A stretch of DNA of 64,000 nt from Dimorphilus gyrociliatus. Its lineage: Eukaryota > Animalia > Annelida. Both the position numbers and the translations under genes were made by a program. Of this stretch, positions 1,912-63,539 are shown one piece after another. The stretch is from assembly GCA_904063045.1 (NCBI GenBank), contig CAJFCJ010000006.1, positions 124,001-188,000 of the forward strand, written 5' to 3'. A model generated the notes under the pieces. It saw nothing but the letters and a program-made list of their open reading frames with translations. It was not told where the DNA came from and searched no databases. Position 1 is the stretch's first letter. Each line of letters opens with the position of its first letter.

Positions 1912-3742
1912 ATGGATATTGACGAGGCATTCGTCAAAATTGGACAATTTGGCTCACACCAGAAGAAATTATTTGCTTTACTAGCAATACAAAAAATATT
2001 TCTTGGCTTGCAGATGGTTTTATCAGTCTTCTTAGCTTCCGATTCAAATTTTAAATGTTATGTAAAATCCATTAATACAACAGTGTATAATGAATGTCCT
2101 AAAACGGGAACATGTGATAGTTATACTTTTATAAATAATGAATTTTATTCTATAGTTTCAGAATTTCATTTAGCTTGCTCAGAATATTATAAATCAGCTT
2201 TAGTTCAAAGTATTTTCATGTTAGGAGTTTTATTGGGTACAGCAATTTTTGGTATTTTATCCGACCTTTATGGTAGATTACCGATATATTTCATAGCTAG
2301 TCTCGGGTTAGTGATTTGTGGGTTTTGCACTGCTTTAGCGTCTAATTATACGCAATTCTTGTTTGGAAGAGCAACTGCTGGAGCGTTTGCTGGAGGTGTC
2401 TCACTAGTTAATTTTATTCTTATTTTGGAATTGGTCGGGCAGGACTATCGAACGTTTTGCGGTAACGTTTTTCTGGGCCTATTTGCTCTTGGGATAACAG
2501 TATTGGCAGGAATTGGTTATGTTACACCGAATTGGAGATTATTATGTTTTTTGACTACCTTGCCAACTGCCTTGCTCCTTACTGCTTCTAGTTTCATTAT
2601 CCACGAATCTCCCAGGTGGTTATTTACACAGGGTAGAGTCGCAGATGCTGAAAGAATAATGCTTAACATGGCAAGGGGAAACGGCTTGAGTCTTTCGTCT
2701 ATTAGATTAAGAGATTTAGTATTATCTAAAGCAGATAGCAATAGAAATTTGAAATTGTTAAAAGAACCACTGTTGCGGAAGAGAGTTTTTGTACAGATGT
2801 ACTCGTGGTTTGTCCTATCAACTGCCTATTATAGTATTACTCTTGAAGAAGGTCAAATAGGAATAAATAGATTTCTAGGTTTTGCTCTAACAGGTATAGC
2901 CGAAATTCCAGGCTTAATAGTCGCTCATCATTCCATGAATTATTTTGGAAGAAAAAATACGCTTAGCGGTTTCGCTGTAGCAACTGCTGCCCTCTGTTTT
3001 TGTATTATCCTCATTCCATATAGTTAGTGTGAAAATATTGACTTCATCTTATTATTCCCTTATTAATTTTCTTATTATTTAGTGTAGAACTGGATCTTAT
3101 CCTCTTTCTAGTATCAATAGTAGCTAAAATCACAATTTCAGCTAGTTATGCAACAGCTTATATCTATTCTGTCGAGTTATTTCCCACTGTAGTTAGGTAA
3201 TTGTGTTACTGTTCTTTAAATAACAATGTTTTCTAGTACTTTTTTTAATCTCTTTAAGAAATAATGGGATGGCTGCTTGCTCAATAGCAGGAAGAATAGG
3301 TGGAGCCTTAGCCCCTTTTACGCTTTCCTTGGTATAATTTATTACAAAATTAAAATGTTCGTGTTTACTTTATAGTCAACTTAACGTTTAGGGACAAGTC
3401 TTCTCAGAATTAAATTACATAATTTACGGTCTCTTTTTAATCTCTATTTATCTATCGAACTTTTCTCTTCCGGAAACGATGAATGATCATCTACCTGAGA
3501 CAATATCCGACGTGTTTATTAGTAATTTGAAGAGGAGTTATTCCTACTCTCAGTTACATTCTGACAGAATACCTTTAAGAAGTAACACAGAAGATTTAAT
3601 AGATAATAGCAAAGTGTTACAGAGTAATACAATAAAATCAAGAGATGTCTATACGACCTTCAAGAAGACAAATACGCCTTGGCAGATCTCTCAGTACGTA
3701 AAGGACACAGGTCTGATAAAGCAGAATTTCAGCTATCCTTAG
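1912..3742 (+). CDS. SLC22 family organic cation/zwitterion MFS transporter (SLC22A15-like)
   Basis: SLC22 hallmarks: N-terminal IGQFGSHQKK, SIVSEFHLAC, LSDLYGR, ESPRWL and ELFPTVVR. Three short 3' introns follow 3021, and the stop is at 3742. Confidence 0.88.
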
Positions 3743-3979
3743 CAATTTTAAGAGAAAATGTCGTAAAATATGTTAATAAAGTGAATATTATCTTAGATGA
3801 AACTATTATTTAGCAAGGCCATTATTTATTAATCCTATATTGTATATTTCGTCCTTTTTAAGGACATTTTCACTTGAATAGAAATAACAAAAAGGAAGTT
3901 CTCCCCATAAGTGTTATTATTGGGCTTGTCTATCATTTAGGAGCAAGTTCTGGTAGTTCTCTTCATTTATGACGTAAAT

Positions 3980-6102
3980 TTAAAGAGTATAAGAGAGAAT
4001 CTTGGGCCTACAAAGATACAAATCTATTCTGTAAATCGAGACTTGAAACTGATTAAAAACACGTTGATACCATTGTTTCCCTACTTCGTATTCGGCTAAT
4101 GCAAAGCGACGACCGTTTTTTAGTTGATATTTCTAGAAATCACCATAAAATAAAAATTAATTTTTATAGGAGATGATTAAGAATTAATGTACCAGTCTTT
4201 TAAATTGAAGTGTTTCCCTATGAAAAATAGTACTTGAAAATTCTTTTCACATCTTTTCAATATCATATGTGTAATTTAAATATGTACGTTCTACATATTT
4301 TACAATCTAAAATCGAATGAAAGAGTTTTGTTAAAGGGAATGTCAAGTTCATCGACCTACTTAACGGACTAATGAAAGCGATAACAAATCTTTCGACTTT
4401 TGTAAACAAGATAAATAATAATCTATATAAGTAATTGAAATAATTATAAGAAATACATTGAGGACGTTGACAGGAGTCGTAACATTAGAGAGAAATGAGA
4501 GATAAAAAGGTAAATGAGGGAATCATTAATTCCCATTTTGTAAAAAGTTTAATAAAATATACTTTTTTATAAGAAAGGAACAACAAAAAGCATTAATTTA
4601 TCATCAAAAGATATAATTTTATTGCGTAAATTTTAAGTCTGTCATATACTTTAAAGGTAAAAGTTTTGTTTATTTTTTTTCCTTCTTTCTTTCTCTTCTT
4701 CTAATAATATATAATAATAATAACAATAGTAATAATAATAATGATAATAATAATAATAATAATACAATTAATGACTTTTGGCCCAAAAAAAAAAAGAAAA
4801 GAAAGTTTACAACAATATACATAAAGCTCTTTAATACATTCATGAACAATAGACAAGTTTTTTCTTTTTAAACGATTATACAAGATATGAACACAGTTTA
4901 AGGACAAGCTAATAAAGACTAGCTAAAAACTTCGCAAAGAGACATTCATATATGCAAATGAAGAGAATTTTTTTTCGTCGACCTAACTTTATCTTCAAGG
5001 ATCGGTAATGCTGTACCTGCACAATTCTTCCATCTGTTCATTTTGTTTCTGTTTTTTTTTTTTAAGTATAAAAATAGAATTTGATTTTAAAAAAAGAAAA
5101 AAAAGGAAAATAGAGTGGCGCCTCTATTTTTTTCAACCTACTTGACAACAACTGTTGAAGGCCAAAGTATGATCGGCGTTTCTTATACATTTTGAAAAGT
5201 GGTGCATTATTCGGCGGCCTCTCCTTGGATATTTCTACAATATAATAAAGCAAATTACTCAATTAGAAAACAACAATTAAGAAAGCCATCTTCCATTTCC
5301 CATTAGGCTTAATTGTCACCAAACTCGGTCAATGACTTTTGTTGTAATGCAATTTACAGGAAAAGTAAATTAAGTGTATCCTTACCAATAAGAAATCTCT
5401 TGTCTCTGAATTGTGTGGTCTATTTACGTTCCTAAAAGCTATTTTATCAGCATAAAAAGATACTTCGCAGAGGAATCCCTTAACCCCAGCCAAAGTACCT
5501 AGCATGCAGCACGACCAATGCTGAATTGGAACCTCTGTTGACGTATTTTATTAATAGAATTGGACAATATTTTTCAATAAATTAAATACAAACTATGAAA
5601 ATATTTATATAATTGTGACGATGGATTTGCTTCGCATTTAGGACGACTCTTCCTCTCCATTTGTACAAGTTCATTTTGACTACGATTTGGGTAAGTATAA
5701 CTGAATAAATAATCTGTTGAAAATGACAAAAATCATGATAAGCGTATACAGTATATCTTTAAACATCATAAATATTCATATATTGTAATTAATAAACAAA
5801 TCTAGTGATATGTAAATATGTATAGAGTATAGTAACTATGTTTATATATATATATATATACTGTATTTATTAATATTAATAAAGGATTACTAATACTATA
5901 TTATAATATATACAAATTTATATTAATATATATACATATAGAATGCCACTTGTAGCTATTGTTTTTATATCGTAGTATTTTGACATTGCTTACCCTCGAA
6001 AGTTGCATAGAATGCTCCACGACGAGAGCTAAGTTCTTCAAGGCGTATTTGACAATAAGCTGTCGATAGGACGGCTAGGTATACGAAGTAGTAAGACTTC
6101 AT
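3980..6102 (-). CDS. Unannotated secreted cysteine-containing prepropeptide-like protein (about 174-226 aa depending on the 3' exons)
   Basis: Hand-built exons are 6102-5994, 5713-5594, 5534-5386, 5234-5142 and 5048-5017 (or 5048-4995 with a stop), then 4217-4193 and 4132-3980. All introns are GT-AG, phases are compatible and the frame stays open. The protein has signal peptide MKSYYFVYLAVLSTAYC and several dibasic sites. Confidence 0.6.
4702..4764. repeat. Imperfect (AAT)n microsatellite
   Basis: About 20 AAT units with a few interruptions, directly visible. Confidence 0.9.
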
Positions 6103-6709
6103 GTTGAATCTTCTTTAACGTACTACGGCAAGATCGACGCTTTTATGAAGAAAAAGAACATCGGCGCCACATCTATCATACGATCTTGTAACCAATCATA
6201 ATTGAGAATCGAAATAGCACCACAGTTCATTAATATTCATTAGGGCTCGTGTCAAACCGGGGAAGCGATAGGCCTAACATTTTCGTACTCTCTTTTAGCA
6301 TCAAAACATGTAGTTTTTCGCCAAATCAATATATTGTAACAATCAACACTTACTTTATTGACACTTTTATAGGCTTATTTAAATTCCGGTCAATCTTAAT
6401 CATAAATCTATATTCCTTAATAATATCTATCTATAAAGGGCATTTATATATTTTTTATTTATATAATATTTCCTTTTAAATGAAATTAATAGGAGGAGAA
6501 AATAAAATAGAAAATGCTTGAATGATTTTTATTATTCGTGTAAAGGTGTGATATTAATCGTGATTAGGCGCGTCTAAACGGCTTAACTGGATAATACAAT
6601 TATATGTTGACATAATTTTCCATATCGTTCTGAATAAGAATAACCGTTCTTAAGAACCCCAATAGAAGTGAAATAAAAATCGTTTTCATTTAGTCTCAAA
6701 CTCTTGGCC

Positions 6710-34794: not shown

Positions 34795-36201
34795 ATGACC
34801 TCGACTACCAGTACAATATATAGTATAACTAATACGGGTTTTAAAATGCTAATTACTACAGGTGCCGGTAGCTCAGAAGGTATGCCTGCATTAAATAGAA
34901 GCTTTAATCCCGTTCCCGAAGAATTGTGCCCCATTTGTGGAGATAAGACTTCTGGCTACCATTACGGCCTCCAAACTTGTGAGAGCTGCAAAGGCTTTTT
35001 CAAGAGAACTGTCCAGAATAAAAAAGTCTATTCGTGCGTTGATAATCAGAACTGCCCGATTGACAAGACTCAGAGAAAACGATGCCCCTACTGCAGATTT
35101 CAAAAGTGCCTAAATGTTGGAATGAAATTGGAGGCTGTGCGAGCCGATAGGATGAGAGGTGGAAGAAACAAATTTGGTCCTATGTATAAAAGAGATAGAG
35201 CTTTAAAGCAACAGGCATTACGTCAGCGCCAACAGCTCATGTACGTTCAACATTCAACGCCCATGGATCAAGCTAGCACTCCAGATATTAAACCAGATGT
35301 ATCCAGGCTCTATCCTCCCGTTCCAACAAATATGGCATCAGGACCAACGTCCGCCTCGTTCTACGAATCATCCGCAAATTTCTCCCCTACTGGTTATCAG
35401 CCTCCCGACATAACCGACCTACGAATGCCGTCGCCAAACGTACCTGAGATAGTTCGAACTTTAACTCAGGCTTGTTCAACGTGTGACGGTGAAGAATTGA
35501 AAATTAGACTTGCCAACACAATTGAACAGGAAATGATGAAATGGGTTTCATCAAGCTCCTATCCACCTTTCGTCAATGAGCAAAATGACTTAAGTTGCGA
35601 AATATTACACCTGTTGTGCAGGCTTGCCGATTTGAGTTTATTTCATTTAGTTGAATGGGCAAGACAAGCCATCTTCTTCCGAGATTTACAAATCGATGAT
35701 CAAATGAAGCTTTTACAGACCGCTTGGTCTCAATTACTTGTCCTTCATTTCCTCTATCGTCAGATTCAAGCCGACAAGCAAGACGAACTCATACTAGTAC
35801 ATGGTCACTCGATTTCATTCGATTTCATCCGGCGGGTAGGTTTAACAGACTGGATCGCTATTTTAACAAATACTACAAAGAAGCTTAGAGCCTTGAACAT
35901 TGACGAACAAGATCTCGCTTGTATTAGATATTTAGTACTCTTAGAGCCTGACGTTGCTGTTACAGATGAAGCTAAAATAAAGATAGAAAATTGGCAGGAC
36001 CAAGTTAGCAGAGGATTACAAGAATACACAATTAGTTGTTACTTCCATGCCCACGATAAATATCAGAAATTAATCCTCATGCTACCTGAACTTAAGCAAC
36101 TGGCCGTTAGATGTGAGAACTACTTGTATAAGCGTCATCTAGATGGTGATGTTAAAGAACACAACTTGCTTATGGAAATGTTGCACTCTCAGAGAAATTG
36201 A
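34795..36201 (+). CDS. ftz-f1: Nuclear receptor NR5A / FTZ-F1; DBD and LBD in a single exon, true N-terminus uncertain
   Basis: [37 protein letters not shown]1 box [27 protein letters not shown] and AF-2 NLLMEMLH. A probable splice acceptor lies at 34861. Confidence 0.95.
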
Positions 36202-55990: not shown

Positions 55991-58900
55991 TTATTTTATC
56001 TTTTTAAGCCTACCTGCTAATCCATCATCTGTTATGTTTATTGAATCATCGTAGATTGGAGAAACTCGATCTACAGGCGCAATGAATAATCTTCTTCTGG
56101 ACTTTGACTTTGTAAGTCCTCTCCCTCCCTTTCCAGTTGGTGGCCTTCGCCATGGTAATCTAAACTTTTTAACTGATTTAGGTCTGATCGCTGCTGCGGC
56201 TGCTGTTGCTGTTACTGCCGATGTCGTAGCAGCTATTGCTGCTGTAGCTGTCTCATTATTGACAGCTGACTCCTCGTCAACGTCAGCCATAGTTGGTTCA
56301 TCTTCTGCCATTTGTCGAAAATCGAAAAGTGTATTCTTTTTTTCAACCTTGACTTGTGCCGGTTTGGTAGGCTGTTTAAGAGTTCCCTTTAGTGGTGGAA
56401 GAGTTTTTGGCTTTTTAAATGGCTTCTTCTTCGCCGTTGGTTTATTAGATTTTTTCTTTTCCGTTTTAGGCTCTTCTGCAGGGGGTGGTGGTACAAGAGG
56501 TGCAGCACCTTCAGTCACATCCGAATGAACTTCTACTTTTTCTTCTATTGGTGAATTGTTGGATTGTTCAACAGCCTTCGACTCCAGATAGGCTACATTT
56601 GAAGCCGAAGTCATGGCGGCAAGTATCGAAGATCCTTTCGGTTGAGACATTGAAGCTTCGACAATAATTTCATCTTTTTCATCTTCCAATATTTTATCAG
56701 CGGCTGTCTTGTTCTTCTTCTTTCGTTTGCAAAATTTCCATATACAAACAACCAACACCACAACTAGTAGAGCGGCTAATATAGCTGCTACCGGCACTGT
56801 TTGGATAAATATTATTTATTAAGTGGACGTAAGATGTCGCTACGTATAATTAGTGTTAAATGAGACGATTAGCTCTAATCTTATTACAAGGATCAATTGA
56901 ATCGAAATGGTAAAAACAAAGCAATTGTCTTTCCTCATAATATAGCTTTTATAAAAGCCCTTTATATCATTCATGACTGTTATAGGAATAGAAAACAATT
57001 AAATTATAGGCCTATAAAAACTAACCGGCCCATGGATATTTGCAAACAAAGATCGTGCATATAGGCTCCACTCTTTTGCCACCTGTTGAAATATTTATCG
57101 CTTTAGATAAAGTTTCAATAATTAATGGTCCTCCCTCCCGCTTCATTTATCTTTTTGTTTAAAGCTTACCTAAGATACAAACGTGATCTGCATTTTCTTC
57201 GTAATCTTTGATACACGAGCATTTCCCATCCGTTGTACATTCAGCATTAGGATCTAATTCCAAACAAATTGAAGAGGAATTGCAGAAAGTTGAATTCAAG
57301 GGTAATTTTTCACAAAATGAACCATTCTGATTTTTAGTTGGTTTATACGCCTTTTGACATTCACATACACCGTTTATACACTCCGAATTTTTCACTGGAC
57401 AGGCATGTGTCGAATTGCAGTATTCATATGTTAAAACATTTGTACATTTGCAGTTTAATAAATCATTTGTCTCCTGACAGTCTCTCCGGCAAATACATTT
57501 GCCATTAGAACAGCTGGAATTTGAAGCAAATGGAAAACAATCTCTTGCTGTTTCGCACGGAATATCTTTCAATTTCTTTCGATAGCAGAATTTCCCCGTC
57601 GAATCAAATATATAACCTTTAATACATTGACATTTACCCTCCGTACATTGGGCAAATGTTGATAAAATCTGACATTCAGAGTTTTCAGAACAAGTTGAAT
57701 TTTCAATTGTCCTCCTTAAACATTGCGTTCTCTCTTTATTCGGACTATGTGTTTGCGGACAAACACAAAATCCATTGAGACAAATAGAATTAGGTAGTGT
57801 TGCGCAATGTGAGTTTTGATAGCAGTCGAGAACATTAACTTTATTAGATCTGCAGGTGAGCCTATTAGCGCTGAGAGCATATCCAGACTTACAACGACAC
57901 TTTGATTTAGAGAGGTCACATTCGCTATACGATATAACTGAGAGGCAATCTTGATCTTTTTGACACCCAATAGCCGGTATTATAATACGTTTACAAGAAA
58001 AGTCTATAGTTTCATAGCCATGTCTGCATATACAAATAGAATCATTACAATAGGAATAGGTGATCAGGGATTGGCATATAGCAGTACTAGTACAACTGGC
58101 ATTTCCCGGTTTGGCCCTTATACACGAATCACTTGTTGGATTCCAATGTTGATATATACAAGAACATTTCCCCCCGTCACATATAGTATTTGGGATATGT
58201 TGACAATCTTCATTAACCGTGCACGATGAGTCTATTGTCTTCAGCTTGCATTCGCTACCTATCTGCTCATAGGTTTGTTTACATTTACATTTATTTTCCG
58301 AACAAATTGAGTTCGGTAGTGTGGAACAGTTGCTAGAGTGAATGCAAAAATCTCCTAATGCCCATTTAGAGCAATGCGTAGAATTATCCATTCTAAAATC
58401 AGGTAGGCACCTGCATATGCCGGCAGAACAAATAGCATTTGTTAAGCCAAGACAATCGAATGTACTTAAACAATGTCTAAATAAAAGTCCGCCCAGTTTG
58501 CATTCTCCACCTTCCGCGTAATAGCTTGTTGCGCATATACATTTATTGTTCGAACAAATTGAATTTGTTATTACGGCTGAACAATCCTTATCAACTAGAC
58601 AATGATCCGATAGGCTCCCTATTAGAGATAAAAAAAAGTGCATTATTTCAAAAGCTTAAAAAAGACAAGTGCAAAACTTACTCTTTGAACATACTGTACC
58701 AGAGCTGAGGCTCTTGTAACCGTCGTTACAAATGCAACTATTATTGAAGCAATGGCTATTAGTAATTGATGTTGAACAATCAGCATCATTTCGGCATCCA
58801 CTATCACCAATTTTCAATTTTTCACAAGAATTTCCCACACTTTTATAGCCTACTTTACAAGCACAACTTCCCGACGAACACTCAGAATTCCCGCCTGTGG

Positions 58901-61900
58901 CCACCTCACATTCGGAGGAAGATGTACAAGAATCACCAAGGTTTTTGATTATACAACCATTCAATTCAATTTTATATCCAATTTTGCAGACGCACTTCCC
59001 TTGAAAACAATAAGAATTTGAAATGAGTTTACAATCAATGTCGGTCGAACATTGATCGTTCAATTTCCTTTCTTCGCAGATTTTTCCATTTATAGTTTTA
59101 TAACCGTCTAGACATTCGCATTCCTTTTTAGTGGAGGAACATTTAGTGAAATTCAAAACAGAATTACAGTCATTATTCTTTGTACAGGAGTCATTTAGAG
59201 TTCTTATCTGACACGATGAATTCGAAGCGATCGGGAAATGTCCAATTTTACATTGACATTGACCACCAGCGCACTCGCTGTTAGCAATGTGGACCTGACA
59301 TTCTGTATCTGTTGTGCACTGGTCACCAGTTTTTAATTCTTTGCACTCCTTACTCAGAACTTTATAACCGAATTGACAATGACAAAAGCCTCCGTCACAA
59401 GTGCTATTAGTTATAACAGCATTACAGTCGGTATTCAAGGAGCAGGAATCATTTAATTGCCCTTTACAAGAAAGGAAAAAAAAGCATATTGTATATTAGG
59501 TATATTGAATTTTTCGTATACATATATACTGAATATATATATATATATATTTCCTTGAATGTAATTAATATGTAGTCATTTGCAGCATTAATACGTAAAA
59601 ATCATTAAATAACTATAGTTGGTCAATGGACTGAAATATATATATATATATATATATAAAGCGTTCGAAGACAGTAGCACATTAATAAAATGAAATGTCA
59701 AATAGAAGAAATTAAAAAAAAGACAAAAGAACAAATTACACTCTTTGGTTTTAGTAGGCGAATTTAATATTATGTTTTGTCTTGTATACCAAATCAAGCA
59801 AAAGATAAAATCTATTCGTGCAGCATGAATAAATCATACCCATAGCGACTATACTGCAAAATAGTGATCATGCAAAAGCATAACTTGAAAGGGAATTTAC
59901 TATAGGTGGGCATTGAAAAGTAATCTTCATGCAATTTCCTTACTTATTACGCATTCCTTTCCGCTATTGAGACTTTTAAATCCGAGTTTACAACTGCAAA
60001 CGTTGTTTAGACATGTACTATTTCCAACTGCAAAGCTACAATCTGGATTTGATTTGCAAGAATCGTTAACTTTTCTTAATGTACAATTAGTTAAATTAAG
60101 GCTTGTATAATATCCAGTTTTACAGGAACATGTTGAATTAGCGCATTCGGTATAGTTAACCGCATTGTTGCAATCGGTGTTCAATTTACAAGAATCACCA
60201 ATTTTTCGAAGAACGCATGTCTCGTTAATTGAATTAGAATAAAAACCACTCGTACATTGACAAGATGAATTTGAACATATACTATTATTAACTGCTAAAC
60301 TGCAATCGTCAAATGTTGCGCAACTATCACCAATTTTCCTTAGGATACAACTAGAATTCTTTTCATTCCTATATCCTTTAGAGCATTCGCATGTAAAGCT
60401 AATACATAGGCTGTTATTAACTGCTTTGTTACAGTTTTCGTGATTCTTACATTTATCGCCTATTCTTCTCATACTGCAAAATGATTCATTCCTTTGACTG
60501 AATGCAGTGTCGCATTGGCAAGATCCATTATTACATAAGCTGTTATTAACTGCAAAGTTGCAATCATTTAAAGTTTTACATTCACTCTCAAGTTTTCTTA
60601 ATGAACATTCCGTATTTTGTTTAATCGATAAATATCCAATTTTGCATTCGCAAGTTTTATTTGAAGAGCATATACTATTTTGAACGGCAAAACTGCAGTC
60701 TTCTGATATAGCACAGGAATCACCAATCTTTCTAAGTTTACAAAACGTTCCGCTTGATATTGAATAAAATCCAGTTGCACATTTGCACACATTATTTAGA
60801 CAAGTAGAATTATCCACTGCAAAATTACAGTCATTCTTCCACTTGCAAGAATCTCCTATCTTTCTTAAAGCACAGTTCGATAGTTGAGAATTGGCAATAT
60901 AACCGATTTCGCATGAACAAGAGCTATTCGTACAAATACTGTTATTTATAGCCTTTTGACAATCCGATTTCCAAAGACAATAGTCTGAAATTTTCCTTAG
61001 AATACAGGAATCGTTAAGACCACTTTGATAAAATCCTTCAGCACAATGACAGGTAGTATTAACGCAAATACTGTTGTTTACAGCAAAACTGCAATCTTCA
61101 ATATTCTGGCAAGTATCGCTAATTTTCCTCAGAATACACTTGGTATTTTCTTCATTCCTGTAACCTTTGTTACAAGAGCAAATATTTCCCAAACAAATAC
61201 TATTATTAATAGCAAGGTTACAATTTTCTTTAACTTGGCATTGATCTCCAATTTTTCTCAATGAGCATATAGAGTCGTTTTTCTCTATGAATTCCGTTTT
61301 ACAGTTACAAGTATTATTCAAGCACAAGCTATTGTTAATCGCAAGACTACAATCTTGTAATTTGGTACACTTATTTCCCAATTTTCTTAAAATGCACGTT
61401 GTATTGGCGTTAATTGAATGGAATCCTAGAAGACATTCACAAGTTCCGTTATCTGAACAATGACTATTTTCAATTACGCTATTGCAGTCTTCATTTTTTG
61501 TACATTTGTCACTTATAGTTCTTTTAACGCAGCTGGAATTTTCATTATCTGCCCGATATCCAGTAACGCAATTACATGTAGTATTTACGCATGTACTGTT
61601 TTGAACTGCAAGGCTACAGTGTTTATCTTCCGAACAATTATCGTTAATTTTCCTCAGATTGCATTGGGTTTTGTCAATGTTTGAAATAAATGCAGTATTA
61701 CAATTACAAGTTGAATTTGAACATGTACTATTAATTATAACTGCGCTGCAATCATCAGAATTGGAGCAACTATCGCCCACTTTTCTCTTGAAGCATTGAC
61801 TTCCGTTTGTATTTGAATAGAAACCTGTTTGACAGGTACAGATTCGATTTATTGAGCATTTACTATTAGATATTACTAGCAGACATTCAGCGTCTGATGC

Positions 61901-63539
61901 ACAGCCATCGCCAATAGTTTTTTCAGAGCAGCTTTGATTTTGAAATGGTTTAAAACCTTTATCGCAAGAACAACTTCCATTTAAGCATGAGGTATTGAGT
62001 AAAGACTTTGGACAATTTTCGTCAACTGTACAAAAATCACCTAGCTTGCGCAAAACGCAATTAGACGCCGTAACGTTTTTATAGCTGATATTGCATTGGC
62101 ATTTACCAAATTGACAGACAGTATCATTCATAACTGAATCGCAATCAATATTCGAAGAACAATTGTCATTCAATTGCCTTCTATGACAGATAGTTAGGAG
62201 GGTATTTTCGTAATGACCTATATTACATTTACATTTGTTCGATTCGCAACTGGAAAATTGTACAGATGTGGAGCAATCTATACTTTGATCACAAGAATCT
62301 TTTATCCTGTAAGGAACGCATTCCGTATGATCCAGAGATGAATAAAATCCGATTAAACAATCACATTTTGATGTATTGCAGAAGCTATGTGAAACAGCGA
62401 AACTGCAGTCCGTATTCAAAGTACAGGAATCCCTTACTTTTCCTGAAATGGTAAACTATATGCTAACAAGCATAATAACTTATCAAAAATGTGCTCAAAA
62501 GCTCTTTTCCACTTTTTGGGGGATTTGTGACTCAAAACAGGAAATAAAAATAAAAAGAACCCACACACATCTATGTAAAAAAGTAATTGACATGAACTTA
62601 TAAAACGTATAAGAACTTACGTTTTATGCAAGTGTCCAAGGCAGCATTAACGTAGAATCCGGGGTTACAAGTACATTTTGAGCTTGTACAATTGCTGTTG
62701 TTGAACGCAGCACTGCAATCGATGTTTTCAACACAAGCGTCGCCATACTTTCCTGAAGGAAAGTTATAGAAATTTTTTAAACGTCTTCTCAATTGTGTTT
62801 ATAAATTATTAAACTTTACTTTTAATACAACTGTTTCCGTCTGAGCCAACATAAAAACCAGCCTTACATTGACAAGTTGACGTTTTGCAGAAAGAATTAT
62901 CGACAGCGTCTCCACAGTCAGAATTGATGGAGCAGGGATCTCCCAGACGTCCTATATAATTAGTTATTAGTATTAAAGTGATTATATAATTGCTTAAAAC
63001 TTACTTAGAGTACAAACAGTATTCTTATCATTCACCATATAGCCAGATAAGCATTCGCATTTATTATTCTTACAAACAGAGTTTGATACAAATTCAGGAC
63101 AATCACAACACCAACTTGATCTACACTCTGTACCTATCCACTTTTCTGAGGAAAATATTAATAGAATATTTTTCATTATCATACGATTAAACCTACTTTC
63201 GTCGTCTTTTGAGCCACCACAATCCGAAAAGCCATCGAGTACATATGATAGAGTTGTACATCCTCCACTTGAACAGGAAAATCTACCTGGAGCTGTACAG
63301 GGACTTGAAACTTCATCGTTGTTATTAATACAATCTCTTACTCCATCATTTCTCTTAGAAGAAGCAATACAAACATTTGTTTCGCACTCGAATTCATCAG
63401 CTTGACACGCGCATTTTATCGTTGGAAGGAGGATGACTAAGGAAATAAATGATAAGAAATTAAGTTAAGTTATCTTATAGAAAACAAAATCAACTTAATA
63501 ACCTTTTACAAGTAAGATAAAGAGAAAATTCTGAAACAT
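55991..63539 (-). CDS. Giant type I membrane protein: signal peptide, 2 atypical LDLa repeats, about 40 six-cysteine EB/EGF-like modules, TM segment and a cytoplasmic tail of about 250 aa
   Basis: Exon 1 (63539-63503) reads MFQNFLFILLVK and exon 2 (63436-63197) carries the LDLa pair. The repeat consensus is about C-x4/5-DC-x6/7-S-x-C-x4-C-x-C-x2-G[FY]-x6-8-C-x2-RK[IL]GD. TM VPVAAILAALLVVVLVVCIW is followed by KFCKRKKK. Confidence 0.85.

Follow-up and report, generated by a model that had tools for sequence, protein, structure and literature searches.

The nearest described counterparts of the gene considered here are the protein DgyrCDS7603 (CAD5118928.1) of the annelid Dimorphilus gyrociliatus together with its relatives in other protostomes, the ANATO domains of C3a/C4a/C5a and the fibulins, the classical amidated neuropeptide precursors and the insulin/relaxin superfamily. 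The gene lies on the minus strand of a 64,000-nt stretch of the D. gyrociliatus genome (GenBank assembly GCA_904063045.1, contig CAJFCJ010000006.1, positions 124,001 to 188,000; hereafter the window), and an earlier reading of these letters, which we call the original prediction, had proposed it as a seven-exon amidated prohormone. Its predicted product shares with DgyrCDS7603 and relatives a signal peptide, the F-[DE]-D-Y-L motif, a linker, a six-Cys helical domain and all invariant residues; with ANATO domains it has in common a small helical domain with six Cys in the order CC..C..C..CC, with amidated neuropeptide precursors its small size, a signal peptide, a number of dibasic sites and a short pro-segment that has S-R-R at its end, ahead of a conserved N-terminus, and with insulin and relaxin a secreted, helical, disulfide-bonded character and a CC pair. 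We consider it likely (probability about 0.8) that window positions 6102-4995 (minus strand) form a five-exon gene for a 174-residue secreted protein of an uncharacterised family, which would act as an intact folded protein. The locus holds a real, apparently unannotated gene, and the amidated-prohormone reading is wrong in those of its claims that are most specific.

The seven exons originally proposed do form a single open frame of 681 nt (226 codons plus stop) in a local frame check, with GT-AG borders at all junctions; introns of 59, 151, 93, 799 and 60 nt measured as predicted, the first being 280 nt long and not 279. It was also correctly seen that a list of open reading frames (ORFs) overlooks the gene, every exon being shorter than 60 codons (the largest 149 nt), and that exon 1 carries an N-terminal signal-like hydrophobic segment. 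A short form ending at 4995, mentioned at the time as an alternative, proved to be the correct model, its stop being kept in an orthologue and its tail matching the tails of paralogues. The features of both models are as follows.

3980 to 6102, minus strand: seven-exon model of the original prediction (6102-5994, 5713-5594, 5534-5386, 5234-5142, 5048-5017, 4217-4193 and 4132-3980), as used in the frame check
5994 to 6102, minus strand: exon 1, 109 nt, with the ATG, the hydrophobic segment, S-R-R-G and the start of F-E-D-Y-L; donor GTAAGC, phase 1
5594 to 5713, minus strand: exon 2, 120 nt, with the D-Y-L motif, a variable linker and a copy-specific Cys (PKCEAN); 88% identity to the orthologue, ungapped
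5386 to 5534, minus strand: exon 3, 149 nt, first half of the six-Cys domain (HWSCCMLG..AG.KGF.C..FY...N.NR)
5142 to 5234, minus strand: exon 4, 93 nt, second half of the domain (IM..FS.C.......F..CC); 84% identity to the orthologue, ungapped
5049 to 5141, minus strand: intron 4, 93 nt (94 nt in the orthologue), confined to these two copies
4995 to 5048, minus strand: coding part of exon 5, 17 codons plus a TGA at 4995-4997, the true C-terminus, with a copy-specific Cys (ELC)
4805 to 4994, minus strand: probable 3' untranslated region (UTR), with conserved blocks to ~4805 and low-complexity sequence beyond

The exon 1/2 junction reads ..TFE|DYL, and exon 2 ends immediately before K-V-P..HW, the start of the Cys domain.

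Homology searches were made with single exons or database proteins, and by way of P0002, a mis-called Logan-assembly protein, they reached a 13-kb contig (L007) of a related worm that is syntenic with the window, the neighbouring genes and their order being identical. In a global alignment of the window to this contig, from which all exon and intron identities were taken, exons 1-5 are 81-88% identical without a single gap column and keep both their splice sites and the TGA, and the introns are 56-68% identical with many gaps. Summed exon by exon, the coding comparison with the contig gives 63.5 synonymous (Sd) and 18.5 non-synonymous (Nd) differences, equivalent to a dS of 1.3, a dN of 0.046 and a dN/dS of 0.035, and on this divergence exons 1-5 are judged to be under strong purifying selection. 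At 27-33% G+C, short open stretches bordered by GT and AG chain easily, as exons 6 and 7 illustrate, so that one might suspect at such a locus an open path arisen by chance, or a pseudogene; but such a path would hardly combine this substitution pattern at this synonymous distance with gap-free exons, a kept stop, paralogues and homologues in four phyla, and we give the idea practically no probability. The original claim of a real multi-exon gene holds for exons 1-5, on the strength of the paralogues, the gap-free orthologue and the low dN/dS.

The last two exons of the seven-exon model behave otherwise. Exon 6 (4193-4217, minus strand) was rejected as coding sequence: its counterpart in the orthologue has an in-frame TAA and TGA and no GT donor, and the paralogues end earlier. 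Exon 7 (3980-4132, minus strand) was rejected as well, as its acceptor AG is lost in the orthologue and indels of 8, 4 and 5 nt break the frame, the orthologous segment having stops in every frame on both strands. The codons past the internal donor of the earlier model (Y-S-I-T-D-P-stop), on the other side of the same choice, show only synonymous changes in the orthologue. Because exons 6 and 7 are broken there, the LKYQLKN-GRR amidation cassette, central to the original prediction, falls outside the gene, and its GRR codons are not kept. The prohormone convertase/PAM interpretation built on it does not survive either, since the GRR is non-coding and conservation is lacking at the internal RK and RRGRR. 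A prohormone of seven exons, cleaved at dibasic residues by prohormone convertases and processed by PAM to LKYQLKN-amide plus two disulfide-bonded peptides, would fit the open, GT-AG-bordered exons of D. gyrociliatus and the signal-like N-terminus and several dibasic sites of the window copy, but it is hardly credible in view of the stops, indels and lost splice sites of exons 6 and 7 in the orthologue, of paralogues and family members that end where the short form ends, of RK and RRGRR sites that vary in the orthologue and the paralogues, RRGRR being absent from the latter and from other phyla, and of supposed peptides that are the halves of a single conserved domain.

Paralogues were sought in the D. 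gyrociliatus assembly (77.9 Mb, 349 contigs), for which the genome paper (PMC7854359) gives ~78 Mb, ~350 scaffolds and a median intron length of 66 bp. Two further copies were found, on contigs C9 and C1, and a family profile search counts exactly three members in the genome. Exon 3 is found in both copies, at 69% identity to the C9 copy and 55% to the C1 copy, and is 63% identical to the protein DgyrCDS7603; both copies also have counterparts of exon 4 and of the last part of exon 1 (S-R-R-G-x-[YF]-[FY]..F). The two paralogues are four-exon genes with a stop ~15 codons after the second CC, and the modelled C9 copy is identical to the deposited 169-residue protein (P0001 = DgyrCDS7603/CAD5118928.1). 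Read through to its TGA, window exon 5 aligns ungapped with the paralogue tails at BLOSUM62 scores of 26 and 20; among the 51,138 stop-free 15-mers of the window in six frames, 3 reach 26, 13 reach 20 and 2 reach both, an empirical p of ~6e-5. Since the exon 5 read-through matches the paralogue tails, the conserved product is the short five-exon, 174-residue form. A possible fourth paralogue on C25 (L004, E 0.008, with a stop) was not recovered by the family profile and was set aside.

An annotated protein for the window gene was found in neither of the two protein searches. As to the third paralogue, C1:2751456-2754587 on the minus strand (L003), it is a four-exon gene whose C-terminus reads ..YELRSYEIN, and the sole database protein found for it (P0003, Logan) is a mis-called, partial protein of its orthologue; the C1 paralogue may also be absent from the public gene set.

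Beyond Dimorphilus, a profile of the three exon-3 peptides, run against 1.84 billion representative proteins, retrieved 52 relatives at E<=1e-3. Those named belong to the annelids Owenia (CAH1795579.1), Capitella (CAPTEDRAFT_224946) and Ridgeia, the nemerteans Lineus (LOC135488088) and Tubulanus (LOC141904093), the chiton Liolophura (LOC135481988), the centipede Strigamia (T1J652), Limulus (LOC106469718) and spiders (Caerostris, CDAR_374461); every one is labelled 'uncharacterized' and none has a precomputed Pfam domain. In the reverse test a 47-member family profile detected exon 3 in the window at E 2.1e-20 and exon 4 at E 0.013, and none of the 12 columns that are invariant in the family alignment is missing from window exons 3 and 4 (first half of the domain: CC, G, G, C, Y, R; second half: F, C, F, CC). 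By this similarity the window gene is a new paralogue within an already deposited, uncharacterised protostome family.

Family members follow a common plan, which the alignment defines as a predicted signal peptide, F-[DE]-D-Y-L, a probably disordered linker and a predicted helical domain of ~95 residues with six invariant Cys, CC-x2-G-x9-C ... C-x9-10-CC. The N-terminal hydrophobic segment is present in nearly all full-length members. At the mature N-terminus stands [RK]-x3-[YF]-x2-F-[DE]-D-Y-L, ahead of the variable linker; the domain opens with ..IL.YF[RK]DVP..HW, followed by CC-x-L-G-x2-A-G-x-K-G-[FY]-x-C ... [FY]Y ... R-N-x-N-R, and after a loop the second half runs ..M..F..C.......F..CC, the two CC pairs being 64-75 residues apart. 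Many members end in a strongly basic tail, and the Dimorphilus copies have no such tail.

Gene structure follows the same relationships. In Capitella, one phase-1 intron follows ..FE and another precedes DVP..HW, the positions of window introns 1 and 2, and the gene reads through where Dimorphilus has introns 3 and 4. Intron 3 is common to the three Dimorphilus copies, and both paralogues read through the intron-4 site, so that intron 4 would be either a lineage-specific gain or the remnant of parallel losses. This intron is of note in that intron loss has been described as the main trend in the D. gyrociliatus genome. In Capitella, the deposited model (CAPTEDRAFT_224946, on KB309929.1, L008 ~2336-2614) departs from the domain exon at ..ELTR, two further exons supplying a Cys/Trp-rich tail; genomic read-through past ..ELTR continues with W, as in the family consensus, and this model is probably mis-spliced at its 3' end.

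Searches for a known family gave nothing. Pfam scans of the exon peptides, 10 relatives and 38 members found no family; a recurrent sub-threshold match to DNA_primase_S (10 members, best E 0.004) was taken as noise. No relative appeared in a PDB sequence search with the family profile and two single members, a word search from the exon-3 region of the orthologue returned only the query itself, and literature searches by accession, sequence motif and topic found nothing on this six-Cys family.

The original prediction had described two paired units sharing K-C..S-C-C..L-C. This pairing exists in the window copy only, and the units are halves of one six-Cys domain: the conserved Cys are the CC..C of exon 3 and the C..CC of exon 4, and the first and last Cys of the supposed units (PKCE in exon 2 and ELC in exon 5) occur only in the window copy and its orthologue. 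The six domain Cys presumably form three disulfides, and the exon 2 and exon 5 pair would probably make a fourth. Compared with DgyrCDS7603 and the other relatives, the window copy is distinguished by this extra Cys pair, by the extra intron at 5141-5049, by an RRGRR in the inter-helix loop and by a tail two residues longer. As the supposed units belong together in one conserved domain, a folded protein is favoured over small excised peptides.

The same holds for the basic sites. S-R-R-G, following the signal segment, is the sole dibasic site kept in all Dimorphilus copies, and it is conserved within Dimorphilus only. The RK site is KK in the orthologue and GKK or GEN in the paralogues; the orthologue has KRSRR in place of the RRGRR of exon 4, and no dibasic site corresponds to it in the paralogues or other phyla. 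Since S-R-R-G alone is kept across the Dimorphilus copies, the pattern is not that of a multi-peptide prohormone. Unlike classical amidated neuropeptide precursors, the family has no conserved peptide copies between basic sites and no conserved Gly-basic signal, and its conserved part is a folded domain of ~95 residues.

The statement that the product is not a canonical insulin stands, as the family has neither the B-chain pair (C-x11-C) nor the A-chain CC-x3-C-x8-C, and no Pfam Insulin match. A looser analogy, in which the basic loop would be excised like the insulin C-peptide to leave two disulfide-linked helices, has some appeal: the loop carries RN.NR.HN[RK][RK] and G-R-x-R in most species, the window copy and its orthologue have RRGRR and KRSRR there, and the loop has the lowest confidence in the structure models described below. 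Yet the other two Dimorphilus paralogues have no comparable loop site, and R-N-x-N-R is nearly invariant, in the manner of structural or binding residues, and does not consist of canonical K/R-R pairs. A two-chain hormone of this type is very unlikely. A likeness to eclosion hormone (the MLG motif and a 12-residue Cys spacing) was rejected, there being no Pfam match and a different Cys order.

Structure models were made on proxies, namely the paralogue P0001 and the domain fragment P0006. AlphaFold2 predicted P0001, with 38 relatives, as all-helical, with a mean predicted local distance difference test score (pLDDT) of 71 and 82-93 over the domain; for the domain-only P0006, with 47 sequences, pLDDT was 81 and the predicted template modelling score (pTM) 0.69. 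It is the loop between the domain halves that has the lowest pLDDT. With the two models, Foldseek against the PDB and VIA-align against 48,161 representatives found nothing above noise, and the ESM Atlas held no match by features or by shape.

One comparison deserves weighing nonetheless. The family has six Cys ordered CC..C..C..CC inside a small helical domain, an arrangement expected of ANATO domains, and this order and the CC-x2-G-x9-C spacing match those of C3a, C4a and fibulin-1, a likeness to be treated as a lead only. The domain could then be a divergent, loop-expanded ANATO, and its members free-standing modules of the C3a/fibulin type, possibly receptor ligands. An exhaustive structure search did place human C3a (4hw5_A) at rank 8, aligning 72 of its 77 residues at 22% identity, the highest identity in the list; but its Z of 3.5 (rmsd 4.3) falls inside the stated noise of the tool for helical models and is tied with unrelated helical proteins. 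The Foldseek and PDB sequence searches gave no support, and Pfam ANATO (PF01821) matched none of 38 members at E<=10, nor anything in the D. gyrociliatus genome. The family further differs from ANATO domains in having ~30 extra residues between Cys 3 and Cys 4, an insertion that this kinship would require, and in being free-standing and not part of a large multidomain protein. We regard a true ANATO relationship as unlikely.

On the reading we prefer, that of an intact folded protein, the product of the window gene would enter the secretory pathway, a short propeptide might in Dimorphilus be removed at the conserved S-R-R|G, and the mature protein would act extracellularly as a whole, not cut into small amidated peptides. 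Some points weigh against this. The hydrophobic core of the window copy (residues 6-15) is modest, with a mean Kyte-Doolittle value of 1.96 over 10 residues; expression and the exact 3' end of the gene are deduced from conservation; and many species have a basic loop between the two halves of the domain (RN.NR..N[RK][RK]), where cleavage could occur.

What such a protein might do is a more tentative matter. It may be an extracellular signalling ligand made by specific cells, a proposal that we would put somewhat short of even odds and that is favoured, for admittedly weak reasons, because of the small size, the strictly conserved surface polar residues (R-N-x-N-R, H-N) and a conserved promoter block. 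A secreted protein without a signalling role, whether matrix-binding, antimicrobial or a carrier, is a less probable answer: it would suit a small, disulfide-rich, helical protein and the strongly basic C-terminal tails of many members, but Dimorphilus copies are without such a tail, and a highly conserved promoter block with homeodomain-type sites fits cell-type control better, if only weakly. More speculative, and quite unlikely as a whole, is the proposal that the family is an ancient protostome ligand, a free-standing, loop-expanded anaphylatoxin-like module released from specific, possibly neurosecretory, cells to an orphan receptor, which in Dimorphilus would have been triplicated and, in the window copy, would have acquired an extra disulfide and intron.

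The promoter block is the following.

6103 to 6270, minus strand: promoter/5' UTR block with an inverted CCAAT box, a TAAT/ATTA pair and, ~44 nt ahead of the ATG, a TATA-like element rich in A/T

Over the 198 nt upstream of the ATG (6103-6300) identity to the orthologous contig is 93%, and nearly 100% over ~150 nt, so that this block is more conserved than the coding exons, whose synonymous sites are near saturation. The inverted CCAAT box, TGATTGGTT at 6190-6198, is a 9-mer that each of the three paralogues has 96-137 nt ahead of its ATG and that the 64-kb window contains a single time, and the block also carries the element TAATGAATATTAATGA, with homeodomain-type sites. At the other end of the gene, conservation past the stop runs for ~190 nt and then collapses near 4805, for which reason 4805-4994 is the probable 3' UTR; an ATTAAA at 4830-4835 is not retained in the orthologue. 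Further downstream, between the hidden gene and a major facilitator superfamily (MFS) transporter gene, two blocks at ~4330-4440 and ~3900-4090, the latter partly overlapping the rejected exon 7, reach 66-78% identity against a background of ~50%. No frame on either strand is open in both species in these two blocks, and an Rfam scan of 3300-6700 found no match.

The surroundings of the gene are those of an AT-rich window (27-41% G+C), and the adjoining genes are ordinary metazoan ones, for an MFS sugar transporter, a cyclic nucleotide (cNMP)-binding protein and a mitochondrial carrier. Farther along the window, a Pfam context scan identified one long ORF at 34795-36201 (plus strand) as a nuclear hormone receptor with zf-C4 and ligand-binding domains, and two large ORFs with many EB modules at 57159-62419 (minus strand).

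In summary, the D. gyrociliatus gene set gains what appears to be a missing gene, and a tempting peptide prediction is corrected: LKYQLKN-amide is not worth searching for. For the study of intron evolution it is of minor interest that a genome noted for losing introns carries the extra intron 4. Our analysis points to a compact secreted six-Cys family that extends from annelids to chelicerates, is under strong purifying selection and has no Pfam model. Families of this kind tend to hide undiscovered invertebrate hormones or cytokine-like ligands, and for receptor screens the slow-evolving members in Owenia, Lineus and Strigamia would be well suited.

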